Source: Octopus bimaculoides (taxonomy: Eukaryota). From it: a DNA stretch of 64,000 nt. Within the stretch, counting starts at the first letter, position 1. The number at the start of each line of letters is the position of its first letter. Positions 16,601-40,600 of this stretch are shown piece after piece. The stretch lies in assembly GCF_001194135.2 (NCBI RefSeq), contig NC_069000.1, forward strand, positions 778,460 to 842,459, in the 5' to 3' direction. Made by a program: the position numbers and the translations under genes. The notes under the pieces are model-generated. The model ran no database searches. It worked only from the letters and a program-made list of their open reading frames with translations, and was not told where the DNA came from.

Positions 16601-19600
16601 CTCCAATTTTAACAACATTGTTCAAAATAAAAACAGCAATTTCGAAAATGCAATGAGAGCCCTTTTGCGAGCAATGCAATGGACAAGTTGAGTACAAGTA
16701 ACAACAACACCAGCAACGGCAGTAATAACAACAGCAGCGACAACATCAGCAGCACCATCAACAACCACAACAGCAACAATAACAAAGGTGACAACAACAA
16801 CAACAATGATAATATTATTATTATTATTATTATTATTATTATTATTATTATTATTATTATTATTATTATTATTGTTATTATTATTCAGTGTTCAAATTCT
16901 GCCAAGGTTGACTTTGCCTATCATCCTTTCAGGGTTGATAAATTAAGTACCAGTTGAGCACTGGAGTCAATGTAATCAACTATCCCCCTCCCACAAAATT
17001 TCAGGCCCTGCGCCTAGAGTAGAAAGGATTATTATCATTATGATTATTATTACTATCTAATAAGGTGGCAAGTTAGTGAAGTCACTGGCATGCCAGGCAA
17101 AATGCTTAGTGGCATTTCGTCCTTTTTTACATTCCCAGTTCAAATTCCGTGAAGGTTAACTTTGTTTTTTTTTGTTTTTTTTTATCCCTTTCAGGTCAGT
17201 AAAATAAGTAGGAGTTGAGCACTTGGGTCAATGTAATCAATTTACTCTTACCTTGAAACTGCTGGCCTGGATAGCTAAGATTCAAAACTTAGCTTAGTGG
17301 TAATTCATCTATCTTTACATTCTGAACCCAAATCCTGCCAAGGTCAATTTTGTCTTTCATCTTTTCGGGGTCTGTAAGGAAATAAGTACCTGTTATTTTC
17401 TTTACTAGGTAAAAAATTATGGCAGTTATTTTAGCATTAAAACTGTAGTTATATTGTAGCCTGTCTCCCAGTTTTTAATTTTTCTCTTCCTTACAGGAAG
17501 CAAATGTCATATGACTCATCGTCTGGAGATAAAGCGGGGAAAAGTTATCAGGTACAACAGAGGAAAGAAGTATCACTAACCTTGGTTCTAATACGACTCT
17601 ATATGGTTGACATTCTTAAAACATGTCTGCTAAAGTTTCTCTATGACATCCTATTGTTTATCAGTCCTCAGGTAATGAGGTATGTTTTTCAAAAGTTTTT
17701 CCTTTGATCTTTTTCTTGTTGCTCTTTCAAGTTTTTGAAAATGTTTTATATTTTATAATTTATTTTCTATTTATGATTGGAGTAAGGACCAAAGATGGTT
17801 ACACCTCCTTGTTAGGCCAGGGCTGTGTGGCACCAGACAGCTAAACATGCATCACCTAGTCTTTGGGAGCTGTGGCTTCCAATGAGAGGTGATTCAGTGC
17901 ATGATGACCAGTCCAGGTCATCATGCACGTTCAGTTGATCTCCACTAATGCCTATAATCTCCCCAAGAACACCACTAATCTTCACCAGAATGCAAGGGTT
18001 GATAGGAAAATAGAAAACAAAAGAAACAAGCAAAATGCTGCACATATCCAAAGAACACATAGCTGTACTCAGTAGTGTAATGAAAGCACTCATTGAATGA
18101 ATGATGTAATGACAATGAAACAATGATGACCATGAATGATTAACTAAAAGAAATTTTCATATTCTCATTCATTTCAGCTTCTTGATAGCATTCATTGACA
18201 GTAAAGAGCCAAGTTGGAAAGGTTACACAATTGCTGTTTCCCTTTTGGTTATGAATATCATACAAACTATATCCTTACAGCATACTTTGTATATTTCTAA
18301 CAATCTTGGACTCATGATAAAACAAGCCGTGACATCAACAATTTTCCGCAAGGTAAGTTTTAATTGGTTCATTTGTAGTACTTTTTCTTTTGTTGGTGGT
18401 TTACACAAAACATTTTCTTTACACTTGTGATCAGTATTTGAATATATTTTGCAGATCAATAAACCACTTGAAAGTTGTTTTTTTATACCTTCTATGGACT
18501 GCTCAAAGCTTACTAACCTCTTATACCATGATTCTTTACATATCTGTACATACACACACACACACACACACACACACACACACACACACACACACACACA
18601 CACACACACACACACACACACACACACACATACACACACACATACACACACACACACACACACACACACACACACATATATAGGTTATGAGCGATAGTGG
18701 TGTCAGTTACACCCAGATGTTTCAGGTAATGCTGAGTAAGTGCTATGGCTAGACCACAGTTAAGCTCCAGGTTCGGTGATTAAGTGAATAAGGGGTCCAA
18801 TGTAGGTCATATATCAGCGTGTGAGATAAAAAGCCAATGCTGTGTATAACATAGAACATTTATAAATAGAAGGTCTTACAGCTGTTTCCAGGATATTTGT
18901 TATATCCCTTCATCTACTCTTTTATTTCATTGCTTATTATCTGCAAATTTTCCATGTCTAGATCTTTTATCTGAATATTTCTATGTCTAGATCTTTCATA
19001 TGTTGTCCACTTGTCTCTGATGACAGAACACCCCATATTCAGGCATACTTGCCTATCACTTGGGATATCCCAGAAACAGCTGTAAAACCTTAACTAATTT
19101 AAGAATAATATAAAATAATGTATATGACTTGAGATGCTTGCTATGTCTCGGCATTTGTTGTCCTCTTTTACATATATATATGTGTGTGTGTGTGTGTGTA
19201 ATGTGTGTATACTAGCATAAAACATTACATCACATTGTATTCCTTCATCTCAAAAGATAATCTAGCTGTTTGGTGAATAAAGATTGATAAAATATGCACT
19301 GACCAACTAAAGTCCTTTGCAATGATTTCATAGAATTTCAGTAAAAGTATAAAAGAGCAAAAGATTTTTAATCTTCTGACTTCTTGATCTTTCACTTATT
19401 GTTTTTTAGGCCCTGACCCTCAAATGCAGCTCATTAAAGGCAACATCTGTTGGAGAGACTGTTAACTTGATGTCAGTGGACTGCCGACGTTTCCAGGACA
19501 CTTTACCGTTCTTCTATTTATTGTTTTCTGCCCCTTTCCAGATCCTATTAAGTCTCTATTTCCTCTACCAACAACTTGGTGCAGCCATATTTTCTGCTCT

Positions 19601-37600: not shown

Positions 37601-40600
37601 TTCAATCGTGTGACATTAGATTTAATTATCCCAATCTGCATCACATTAATCAAGCCTTCTACAATTACCTTGGGTTGACCTAAGCCTTGTGGGTGAGTTC
37701 AATTCAGTCCCAGCAACACTACAAAAGTCATGGGTGTTTCTTCTTCTGACAAGCAATAAAATCAAAATGGTTAACAGGCTCTTGTAGAAAACACTTTGTG
37801 TTAGTCTAGCGTACTATATGAAATGCTTCACTGAGGAGGTCGATGAGACTGAAATAGGTTTCAAGTTATCACTGTGTCTGCTAAAAACCAGATAACCTTT
37901 CTTGTCAAAGATGTACCTACCCACAATTTCAATTAATTGAGACTACAAAATTTTTTGTATGAGTTGTCTCCCTTGCTTTTGTTTGGTTTCTGTTAAGGAT
38001 TATTGAACCACCTCTATTCCTCCTTGATACAAGTTCAGTTTGGATTAATTAAAGACATCATGCCAATGCATGATGTAAATAGCTTACTTTTGTTCACATA
38101 CACACATGCATACACATATGTAGAATGGGTTAAAAATTTCTCTCTAGCATTTAATATTAAGAAAGTAGGGTTACTATGTTGCCTCTGTGTTCCATGAAAA
38201 GATGAAATTTTATTAAAAAAATCTGTTGTTTACCTCTATTTCAGAGGATTGGGGATTTGCCTTGATTTCATTAGTCATTTCACTGTATTTATTACTATTG
38301 TACTGGGTATTGCCAACCGGGATAACATGACAAGTGCTTCTTTTGGTCTGTCGATGAGCAGTGCTTTAAAGGTAAGTGACAAAATGTGTTCCGGCCTTAC
38401 TGAGGTTCTTTCATTTTTGCTTTATTCGATACAGAGCTAAAAACATTTCATATTGCCAGTCAATGCTTACAATTAATGCAATTAGCAGATTACATTCTTC
38501 ATGAAACTCTTTTGGTCTCTTAATCTATTATCTCCACACCCAGAATGATCCTGGGGATGGTTTCATACCCGGCCCCATCCTCTTCCTTCTATGCATCAAT
38601 GACTTACTTGCTAACACATCTAACAACACCCACACCTAAGCAGATAGCACAACCCTTCATTCCTCTTAAATATCCTCTAACCATGCATCATCCATTTGCA
38701 CATGCCAAGCCTGTAACGGCCCCATGAAGCAACACCTTAAATACATCTTCTGTCGCATATGCTAACGTTGTCTCTTTCAGTAAGAAAACACAACTGTAAC
38801 TCATATTGAGAAAACATCCTCACACCACACTCCCCATAACCATGAGTGACACTCTGTTAGAGTCCTTAAAATTGTTCCAGTTGTTGAGTCTCACTATCAT
38901 CAAGCACCTATCCTGGCAAAAGCATATCCTTAACATCCCTGGCCTATCTCTTCAGCTCCCATCAAGTACTGTTACTCTACATGGCTCAGACAAAGCCCAT
39001 AACAGAGCATTGTTCTTGCATCTGGGACAGTGCTACTGCTGCTGCATACATCCTTGATTGCATCCAGAAAAGGGCCACTGGTTGGCATAAAGGCTCCAGC
39101 CTCTGCACTCTTTAGCTTTGCCATTGATCTTTGAGGCTCCTGGCACCTCAGCTTCGGCACTCCTGTCCCATTCTTCTTTCCTCTTCCCATCATCATAAGT
39201 ATCCAACCTCCAGACCCCATACTTATCAATATACTCAGTCCTTCTTTCACAGAATGTTGGCCTTTTGGAATTCCCTTCCTGCTCTTATCTTTCCTGTGAG
39301 TGTTGACTTACAAAGGTTCAAGAGGAACATTAATGGCATCACTCTCACAGGTCCAGATGAACCTGCAAATGCCATGGCCACTCTTTCTTCCTCCAAACCC
39401 AGCAAACAAACAAAAAAAAAATGCAAATTAGACAAACCAGTTGTGTTCTGTCCAATTGGGTCTCTATATTATAAATAGATGAGAGCAATGTTATTATTTC
39501 TGTGATGACAAATCAGTTTCTCATGAAGCTTTAATAAATTACTGAAACTAATGAGATTTATCTCGTATTTTGACGTCAGGAAGAAAAACATGTAATTTAA
39601 CTACATTCTCTATTTTTTAACAGTGTGACTAAACTAGACGTTTGTGTATTAAAACTCTCTCTCATGCTTATAAATTTACCTGACATGCACACATCTCCCC
39701 CTGTCACATCTTCCTCTTGCTCCTTCTTTTTCCTCTTCCACCTCTCTTGTAATTTTTCTGCTTTCAGTTGTCCGTATTTCTGGCTTGGTTTATAAAAGCT
39801 AGCTCTGAGTTGGAAACTCACATTGTCTCAGTCGAGAGAATTGATGAATACACCAAAACAGAAAATGAAGTAAGTCTACATTGCTTTCTTTTTTTATATC
39901 CAATTTTTTGTACCAATGGTTAAGATCACTTGGCCCGCTAGAAATAGCAACCAAATCCTCAAATCACAAAGTTTTCCAGCCACAAAAATAGGAAAAACAA
40001 TTTGGATTGTTTAGTGCAAGATATACTATATTTGAATGAAGGGTGGTCATGGCTGGTATACGTTTGATCCAAGATTTGCTTCATCAAAACTGACTTGAAG
40101 CTAAAGAAAACCAACTGGCAACAAACATGCTCCACATGGCCAACAAACATACTAAAAATCGCAGCCAATATTCCCTCAAACAACATACAATACCCTCTAT
40201 AAAAAGAATGGAATGACACATTTGATAATGTAGTCCAAGATACACTGCACAAGACAAAATGGTCACCGCTGGAATACTTTTGAGATTGGATGTGCTTGAT
40301 GAGGTCTGACCTGGAATTAAACAACAGCAACATTTGAATCCTTTTAAAAATTCGACATACACAAGCTGACATAACCCTGTACTTTGCAATCTAATGATTC
40401 CAGTTGGTCAAAGGCTGACCAACACCTTGAAAGACATATCTGATACACAGAAACTGTGCAGACACCTGTAATGTGTGCATGTATATACACACAGTGCTGC
40501 CTCCTTTTGAGAGCCACATCTTACTCATATGCTTCATTTCTAACTTGGTTTCTCCACCTGAGTTCCCTTCCTATTACCAACTGCTGTACAGAGTGCATTT

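Follow-up and report, generated by a model that had tools for sequence, protein, structure and literature searches.

An octopod ABCC1-like transporter gene of Octopus bimaculoides with an open frame and broadly diverged membrane domains

The DNA analysed here is a stretch of 64,000 nucleotides from Octopus bimaculoides (contig NC_069000.1, positions 778,460 to 842,459), referred to as the window, and it contains a gene for a long transporter of the ABCC family, named gene A in the following. Gene A lies on the plus strand and has 30 coding exons, which extend from the ATG at window position 4644 to the stop codon at 44285. The encoded protein shares its architecture with the multidrug resistance-associated protein 1 (MRP1, ABCC1) and has well-conserved nucleotide-binding domains (NBDs), whereas its transmembrane domains (TMDs) are strongly diverged, including residues that bind substrate in MRP1. 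The gene is under purifying selection and has an octopod-specific sister copy nearby, and it probably encodes an exporter whose specificity has moved away from glutathione conjugates.

Gene structure

The exons of gene A were placed by tblastn with human MRP1, and their boundaries were set by enumeration of splice sites, followed by comparison with RefSeq and with the congeners. Chromosome coordinates of O. bimaculoides refer to CM046620.1 of assembly GCA_001194135.2, in which window position 1 corresponds to approximately 778,460 and the gaps are identical. Joined together, the exons reproduce the 1528-aa RefSeq protein XP_052831143.1, annotated as “multidrug resistance-associated protein 1”, the sole exception being six residues at the assembly gap that begins at 33054. 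The initial annotation had described the gene as the span from 17497 to 39869, which runs from the first base of exon 8 to the last base of exon 25, that is, from transmembrane helix (TM) 6 to TM17, and leaves out the N-terminal membrane domain TMD0, the L0 (lasso) region and NBD2.

Exon 1 (4644..4691) carries the ATG, matches the RefSeq N-terminus exactly, and ends at a GTAAGT donor. TMD0 is encoded by exon 2 (8727..8912, TM1), which is bordered by AG and GT sites and was matched by tblastn to residues 17-75 of human MRP1, by exon 3 (10501..10620), whose acceptor agrees with both RefSeq and the length of human TMD0, and by exons 4 (12021..12149) and 5 (14388..14504, TM5). L0 starts in exon 6 (15829..15890) and continues in exon 7 (15968..16099); exons 4 to 7 all match RefSeq. 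Exon 13 (24086..24170) connects TMD1 to NBD1, and the linker is encoded by exon 19 (31507..31612), which is part of the RefSeq models of all three Octopus species and conserved in DNA, and exon 20 (31869..32016).

Out of the 29 introns, 27 are of the GT-AG type, one is GC-AG, and the donor of one is hidden by the gap at 33054-33063. The earlier statement that all frames and splice sites are intact is thus borne out for the open frame and for these 27 introns, and has to be qualified for the GC-AG intron and for the donor hidden in the 10-N gap, which truncates exon 21. Mutually exclusive duplicated exons, as found in insect MRP genes, were searched for in gene A and none is present.

Family membership and nucleotide-binding domains

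Pfam detects TMD0_ABC (30.7 bits, cut-off 27), two ABC_membrane domains (209 bits) and two ABC_tran domains (168 bits) in the gene A protein, and neither an R-domain-like insertion nor any other new domain. The protein shows the order TMD0-L0-TMD1-NBD1-TMD2-NBD2 of long MRPs and aligns over its full length to human MRP1; its best relatives of solved structure are ABCC2, ABCC3 and MRP1.

NBD1 starts in exon 14 (25493..25565), whose acceptor was read from the DNA and agrees with RefSeq. It continues with the Walker A motif GSVGTGKS in exon 15 (26558..26684), the Q-loop in exon 16 (27139..27315), the signature LSGGQ and a degenerate Walker B (IYILDDP) in exon 17 (29374..29541), and the H-loop in exon 18 (30131..30320), which ends at a GC donor (GCAAGT). 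NBD2 starts in exon 26 (41027..41170) and has its Walker A motif GRTGAGKS in exon 27 (41644..41802), its Q-loop in exon 28 (42568..42734), and the signature LSVGQ, the Walker B motif ILVLDE and the H-loop in exon 29 (43284..43478); exon 30 (44171..44285) encodes the C-terminus and the stop. The two sites differ in the manner typical of long MRPs, NBD1 being degenerate, with the catalytic Glu replaced by Asp, and NBD2 following the consensus. The set of NBD motifs is complete, as the initial annotation had stated.

Human and bovine MRP1 (PDB 8vt4, 5uja) have the same TMD0-L0-(TMD-NBD)x2 layout, the same degenerate site in NBD1, where D follows Walker B, and likewise a catalytic NBD2, and their NBDs are 61-64% identical to those of gene A. 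In contrast, TMD1 is only 39% and TMD2 32% identical. Since all architectural features are found and only the motif of TM16 deviates, membership among the long MRPs (ABCC1/2/3/6-type) stands.

Substrate cavity and TM16

Residues are numbered after human MRP1 (1531 aa), for which the reference used matches PDB 8vt4_A over positions 1-1531 at 3484 bits; residues 1-957 were compared directly and are identical. The initial annotation had called 19 residues by eye, and three MAFFT multiple alignments confirm every one of them; the calls in TM16 and TM17 are also upheld by an ungapped HMMER alignment to residues 1031-1273 (TM13-TM17) of 8vt4_A. Six of the 19 are kept (K332, D336, W553, N590, R1197 and W1246), and the remainder are changed: H335Y, F385L, Y440F, W445F, T550E, R593K, F594A, W1198G, R1202C, E1204D, Y1243F, N1245A and R1249K. 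L381 and Q450 are also shared with human and bovine MRP1.

These positions are distributed over both TMDs. In the first, exon 8 (17497..17679) encodes TM6 with K332, H335Y and D336 (LLKFLYD), exon 9 (18178..18352) TM7 with L381 and F385L, exon 10 (19410..19730) TM8-TM9 with Y440F, W445F and Q450, exon 11 (21167..21304) TM10 with T550E and W553 (CLEVCWK), and exon 12 (22758..22904) TM11 with N590, R593K and F594A (FNLLKAP). In the second, exon 22 (35210..35520) encodes TM13-TM14, including M1093L, and exon 23 (36803..37002) encodes TM15 and ends in AG, the first two bases of the R1197 codon. TM16 follows in exon 24 (38245..38371) with R1197, W1198G, R1202C and E1204D (RGLGICLD), and TM17 in exon 25 (39768..39869) with Y1243F, N1245A, W1246 and R1249K (FLAWFIK). 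Although the R1197 codon is split by intron 23 (AG/A), no alternative choice of splice site gives Trp at 1198.

The rarity of the derived residues was assessed among 218 other full-length ABCC proteins. Two of them occur in none of these: Gly at position 1198, which is Trp in 215/218, and Glu at 550, which is Ser or Thr in 165/218. Lys at 1249 (Arg in 187/218) is found in 2/218, Cys at 1202 (Arg in 196/218) and Ala at 1245 (Asn in 170/218) in 3/218 each, Phe at 445 (Trp in 197/218) in 5/218, and Lys at 593 (Arg in 179/218) as well as Ala at 594 (Phe in 138/218) in 9/218. By comparison, H335Y, Y440F, Y1243F and E1204D appear unremarkable and fall at variable positions: Y335 is present in 42/218 ABCCs and is the usual residue in the ABCC1-like proteins of gastropods and bivalves, F440 is present in 34/218, D1204 in 18/218, and position 1243 is hypervariable, the human Tyr occurring in just 4/218.

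In the structure of bovine MRP1, leukotriene C4 (LTC4) is contacted by K332, H335, L381, F385, Y440, F594, R1197, N1245 and R1249 in the P-pocket and by T550, W553, M1093, Y1243 and W1246 in the H-pocket (PMC8267652, PMC10353158). The earlier claim that the residues called line the LTC4/glutathione pocket holds for those on this 14-residue list, and not for W445, D336, N590, W1198, R1202 and E1204, which are absent from it. With nine contacts changed, gene A retains 5/14 (K332, L381, W553, R1197 and W1246), against 10/14 in Patella and 9/14 in Sepia. Four cationic residues remain in the cavity (K332, K593, R1197 and K1249), as does the “tryptophan sandwich” of W553 and W1246. Two groups that hydrogen-bond glutathione (GSH), the hydroxyl of Y440 and the amide of N1245, are lost, the aromatic wedge F594 is replaced by Ala, and an acidic Glu is placed at 550 in the hydrophobic sub-pocket.

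Several of these changes have counterparts in mutagenesis. Y440F lowers LTC4 and GSH-stimulated transport (PMC10353158), mutants of F594 and R1249 lose GSH export (PMC12647609), and like-charge substitution of R1197 or R1249 leads to a global loss of transport by human MRP1 (PMC8267652). The assertion that such substitutions impair the human protein is accordingly documented in two cases, R1249K and replacements of F594, and no source for N1245A was found in the literature available.

The second affected region is the TM16 motif RW(L/F)xxR(L/I)E, which is found across the ABCC family and is RWLAVRLE in MRP1 and RGLGICLD in gene A. Its counterpart in CFTR (ABCC7) lies in TM11 and comprises R1097-W1098-x3-R1102-x-E1104, the numbering being offset from MRP1 by exactly 100; gene A has G and C at the positions of W1098 and R1102. 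In CFTR, W1098 and R1102 do not line the pore but a membrane-embedded site between lasso, TM2, TM10 and TM11 that binds elexacaftor and lipids. By homology, W1198G and R1202C probably concern the interface between the L0 lasso and the inner leaflet rather than the substrate cavity.

Origin of gene A and its relatives

The proteins closest to that of gene A are its orthologues in O. sinensis (90% identity) and O. vulgaris. Beyond Octopus, identity falls to 49-51% with cuttlefish ABCC1, 44-45% with other molluscs and about 40% with vertebrate ABCC1/2/3. A search seeded with the cuttlefish protein retrieved further ABCC1-like genes of octopus, here called B1, B2 and C. In a neighbour-joining tree (1434 columns, 100 bootstraps), A pairs with B (100) and the pair with decapodiform ABCC1 (100), C joins weakly (53), and vertebrate ABCC1/2/3/6 fall with amphioxus into a group of their own. 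Because of this separation, gene A is co-orthologous to vertebrate ABCC1/2/3/6 and is not a one-to-one orthologue of MRP1.

Copies A and B are also physically close. In O. sinensis, B1 is located on the minus strand of CM016876.1 at 53.61-53.69 Mb and A on the plus strand at 53.74-53.80 Mb, so that the two are arranged head to head, with B1 about 55 kb upstream. In O. bimaculoides, a fragment of B is found at 0.718-0.723 Mb, about 55-60 kb upstream of the window, while A occupies 0.783-0.823 Mb. The paralogous genes of O. vulgaris extend over more than 100 kb. The designation of gene A as a paralogue is thereby well founded, A and B being octopod-specific sister copies that are both co-orthologous to cuttlefish ABCC1. 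If “MRP1-like” is read as an MRP1 orthologue in which only the pocket was edited, the term does not hold, since gene A belongs to a cephalopod clade, has an octopod sister copy, and is diverged over its whole TMDs.

Paralogue B (O. sinensis XP_029647334.1, O. vulgaris CAI9738034.1) shares with A the changes Y440F, F594A and E1204D, the replacement of W445 (by I or F), a small residue at 1245, and an NBD2 that is 81% identical. It differs in reading RWLSIRID in TM16, in having R1249 and, in B1, R593 and T550, and in the loss of W553; the TMDs of the two copies are only 40-44% identical, and A has more unique TMD changes. The nearest relative outside Octopus and decapodiform co-orthologue of A and B, the ABCC1 of cuttlefish (Sepia/Acanthosepion pharaonis, cluster of CAE1235697.1), already carries F594A, N1245S and W445V. 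Unlike A, it keeps H335, F385, Y440, T550, R593, W1198, R1202, E1204 and R1249, and its branch is shorter (0.28 versus 0.45 from the shared node). The ABCC1-like proteins of Patella, Haliotis, Gigantopelta and Owenia belong to the same family and resemble A in domain order and Y335. Their TMDs, which are 70-75% identical to one another and 38-43% to those of gene A, keep F385, Y440, W445, T or S at 550, R593, F594, W1198, R1202, N1245 and R1249.

The changes in gene A therefore fall into layers. Most of the cephalopod copies retrieved share the replacement of F594 by A, G or S, of N1245 by S, G or A, and the loss of W445, and copy C is without R1197, W1246 and R1249; the canonical cavity is absent from every cephalopod ABCC1-like sequence retrieved. 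Specific to copy A are F385L, T550E, R593K, W1198G, R1202C, R1249K and the Ala at 1245. The initial annotation had named the presence of the same residues across mollusc MRP1 proteins as the finding that would speak against it, and such generality exists in part: Y335 is the mollusc norm and the changes of F594, N1245 and W445 are shared in cephalopods.

A further observation concerns copy B. The two B-type proteins of O. sinensis are 98.7% identical in NBD1 and 100% in NBD2, as opposed to 76% in TMD1 and 86% in TMD2. TMD exons of the B2 type are absent from the B1 locus of O. sinensis, and no mutually exclusive exons that could account for the difference between B1 and B2 were found in that locus. 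The pattern reflects either a separate, very recent copy with gene conversion of the NBDs or a chimeric annotation. Divergence of TMDs against constant NBDs appears, judging by these alignments, to be recurrent in the octopus ABCC1 cluster.

Selective constraint

Rates of nonsynonymous (dN) and synonymous (dS) substitution were obtained from codon alignments of orthologous exons of O. bimaculoides and O. sinensis, with bootstrap intervals. For the whole gene, dN is 0.041 and dS 0.129, which gives a dN/dS of 0.32 (0.25-0.42). The ratio is 0.35 (0.25-0.50) for TMD1 and TMD2 together, 0.14 (0.08-0.25) for both NBDs, and 0.087 for NBD2 alone; it rises to 0.46 in TMD1 alone and 0.68 in L0, and the disordered linker reaches about 1 or more. 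The divergence of the intron flanks (K = 0.116) is near dS, so that nonsynonymous sites evolve at approximately one third of the neutral rate, and at approximately one tenth in NBD2. Gene A is constrained, less tightly than would be expected of a housekeeping transporter.

Exon boundaries are identical in O. sinensis for 29/30 exons, exon 1 being unmatched in the locus, and in O. vulgaris for the 24 exons compared; the sole difference in exon length among the three Octopus species is an in-frame indel of 9 nt. O. sinensis has the same derived residues, and so does O. vulgaris from TM6 to TM10; the O. vulgaris model is without TM11 and everything after R1197. The view that gene A is not a pseudogene is confirmed by a frame that stays open through 30 exons, by boundaries conserved in three species, and by a dN/dS that is not near 1.

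A Tajima-type relative-rate count of unique changes in A and B1, with Sepia as the outgroup, gives 60:40 in TMD1 (p=0.057) and 65:39 in TMD2 (p=0.014), with about equal numbers in TMD0, L0 and both NBDs.

Functional interpretation

The explanation we favour, and consider rather probable, is that gene A, one of two octopod tandem duplicates, encodes a functional ATP-driven exporter with broadly diverged TMDs, whose specificity is shifted away from glutathione conjugates. A cephalopod ABCC1-like gene was duplicated in the octopod lineage, giving the neighbouring copies A and B, after which the membrane domains of both evolved fast, those of A somewhat faster, while the NBDs stayed conserved. The divergence extends over the whole TMDs without being directed at the cavity, which is nevertheless left unlike that of MRP1. 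The protein would still export amphipathic and probably anionic compounds through the usual cycle of alternating access, and its substrate range would have moved from cargo of the LTC4/GSH-conjugate type as gene A was sub- or neofunctionalised in a small cluster of octopus ABCC1 genes. Both the transport activity and the changed specificity are what we infer from sequence.

Several points weigh against this explanation. The tree was built by neighbour-joining only, and A and B both have long branches. The O. bimaculoides assembly leaves 34 nt of exon 21 without sequence. Little distance separates the three Octopus species (dS of about 0.13), which makes the conservation of the derived residues weak evidence, and the dN/dS of the whole gene, and of TMD1 in particular, is fairly high for a transporter and fits relaxed constraint too. 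As R1249K alone reportedly abolishes transport by human MRP1, activity of the gene A protein needs epistatic compensation, which is assumed. The protein collection searched contains no transcript-derived entries for gene A, its orthologue models in the two congeners or the B1, B2 and C clusters, an absence that has no bearing on whether these genes are expressed. Finally, the cavity is not enriched for change: among positions invariant in Patella, Haliotis, Owenia and human, 6/10 in the cavity and 97/242 elsewhere in the TMDs are changed (Fisher p=0.32), and hence there is no pointer to directional selection on the pocket. The “remodelled substrate pocket” of the initial annotation, if taken as specific to the pocket, has to be given up in favour of a general, fast divergence of the TMDs of which the altered pocket is a part.

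Of the competing explanations, the one that survives best, itself unlikely, is that constraint on the duplicate gene A has relaxed and that the copy is drifting into a loss of function not yet visible as breakage. It would explain the accumulation of changes held to disable MRP1 (R1249K, W1198G, R1202C and F594A), among them the like-charge substitution of R1249, together with the high dN/dS of TMD1, L0 and linker and the change of about 40% of the TMD positions that are invariant in non-cephalopods; the sister copy B could then hold the ancestral role. The effects of mutating W1198, R1202 and E1204 are reportedly treated in work by Koike of 2002 on the tryptophans and by Situ of 2004 on R1197, R1202 and E1204. 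Against drift stand the lack of any stop or frameshift in the exons compared (29/30 in O. sinensis, 24/30 in O. vulgaris), the retention of all visible splice sites, the low nonsynonymous rate relative to neutral, above all in NBD2, and the identity of the derived residues in O. sinensis and, as far as TM6-TM10, in O. vulgaris. Moreover, the cavities of copies B and C are equally altered, so no copy looks ancestral.

The next explanation in order, which is likewise doubtful, regards gene A as an ordinary octopus equivalent of MRP1 that exports glutathione conjugates and organic anions, the substitutions being neutral or compensated. H335Y, Y440F, Y1243F and E1204D are indeed widespread in other ABCCs, F594A, the small residue at 1245 and the loss of W445 are cephalopod-wide, the four cationic residues preserve the net positive charge of the cavity, and the latter is no more changed than the TMD background. 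On the other hand, the ABCC1-like proteins of gastropods, bivalves, annelids, arthropods and chordates strictly keep the canonical residues, the number of LTC4 contacts retained is well below those of Patella and Sepia, W1198G and T550E are unique with respect to the 218 sequences, and a second copy adjoins.

An improbable explanation is that the cavity (E550, no F594 wedge, no hydrogen-bond partners for GSH) and the lasso-TM16 interface with its RW..R.E motif were retooled at once, for a new class of cargo, such as a cephalopod-specific metabolite or a dietary toxin, and/or for an altered lasso-dependent regulation. The equivalents of W1198, R1202 and R1249, which are regarded as indispensable in human ABCCs, would then be replaceable via epistasis.

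That the transporter role was abandoned for that of a regulator or channel-like ABCC is highly improbable: the family has precedents for such switches in CFTR and the SURs, and a motif of TM16 that is ABCC-wide is broken at the lasso interface, but NBD2 is strongly constrained and has its catalytic glutamate, the signatures and H-loops of the two NBDs are intact, an R-domain-like insertion or other new domain is absent, and the closest relatives are all pumps.

Significance

The lineage-specific duplication of an ABCC gene with divergence of the TMDs is a familiar pattern, and gene A is already annotated in RefSeq. What appears unusual is the combination of a broken RW..R.E motif and R1249K in a gene that is still under selection. 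If active, the protein would represent a natural experiment, namely a selectively maintained ABCC pump that tolerates G, C and K at the near-invariant positions W1198, R1202 and R1249, and models of epistasis as well as of the lasso-TM16 interface, the site of elexacaftor in CFTR, would benefit from it. The missing canonical ABCC1 pocket in the cephalopod sequences retrieved also matters for “MRP1” annotations in cephalopod toxicology and transcriptomics.

Assembly gaps and public gene models

Exon 21 (32835..33053) encodes TM12 and an extracellular loop with an NKT sequon and a run of serines, and its 3′ end is lost in the 10-N gap at 33054..33063, which hides the last 34 nt of the exon, including the start of TM13, and the donor. 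The exon enters the gap directly, the reading frame ending in QRDNFDLY before the first N. At this place, O. sinensis and O. vulgaris read ATTGGAGTTACTGGTGGCCTTGGACTGGGTGAAG followed by GTAAGG, and the exon extends by 34 nt (IGVTGGLGLGE plus one nucleotide). As this extension ends in phase 1, which the acceptor at 35210 demands, it is plausible, from the congeners, that exon 21 of O. bimaculoides continues through the gap.

Both O. bimaculoides RefSeq models are artefactual at this gap, each working around it in its own way. The older one, XP_014768023.1, uses an alternative in-frame donor at 32976 and skips 25 codons with the NKT and poly-Ser loop; this donor was rejected, as O. sinensis and O. 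vulgaris read through it and the NxT sequon is conserved. The six residues “SVLPSG” of XP_052831143.1 (residues 1018-1023; window 35194-35211) were rejected as well, being the translated polypyrimidine tract before the acceptor at 35210, without a preceding AG. The serine run itself, seven residues long and located beside the conserved sequon in the TM12-TM13 loop, is encoded by a coding (AGC)n microsatellite (33010-33030), which exceeds that of O. sinensis and O. vulgaris by 9 nt (3 codons).

Two further gaps lie in introns. That at 29182..29320, within intron 16, entails no loss of coding sequence: the protein reads EIGEK before and GVNLSGGQ after it, contiguous as in human MRP1 and in the ungapped locus of O. 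sinensis. The gap at 33417..34129, within intron 21, is flanked by (CATA)n, (TA)n and (TG)n. The donor of intron 18 (30319-30326) is G/GCAAGT in O. bimaculoides and GTAAGT in O. sinensis and O. vulgaris, a species-specific change from GT to GC in an otherwise consensus donor.

The models of the congeners deviate in other ways. The O. sinensis RefSeq protein XP_036366499.1 begins after TMD0, though intact TMD0 exons 2-5 sit upstream (positions 5322-9423 of the O. sinensis locus), and the O. vulgaris annotation omits exons and divides gene A between CAI9738033.1 (861 aa) and a distinct gene at the 3′ end. For gene A, each of the three public models is imperfect.

Intronic repeats and neighbouring genes

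The introns of gene A contain remnants of mobile elements. On the minus strand of intron 10, an open reading frame at 20485-20739 has the HTH_48 domain of Mos1/mariner transposase (Pfam, E=2e-12), and further mariner-like translated fragments, unrecognised by Pfam, are located at about 6343-6730 in intron 1 and at 13640-14140 in intron 4. A dispersed repeat is present on the minus strand in two intronic copies, at 23394-23672 (intron 12) and 35575-36012 (intron 22), which have a translated stretch in common; the former adjoins a fragment of an unrecognised open reading frame that contains CYGHVMHMD. The introns are filled with long microsatellites of the types (TA)n, (CATA)n, (TG)n and (GA)n, for instance at 18540-18680, 19835-19885, 33064-33416, 34130-34200 and 34745-34850, and these flank every assembly gap, which is probably why the gaps exist.

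Downstream of gene A, a gene on the minus strand is annotated at about 45904-53959, just past a gap at 44868-45819; its product of 747 aa has no Pfam match. In O. sinensis, the downstream neighbour of gene A is a Meis/PKNOX homeobox gene.

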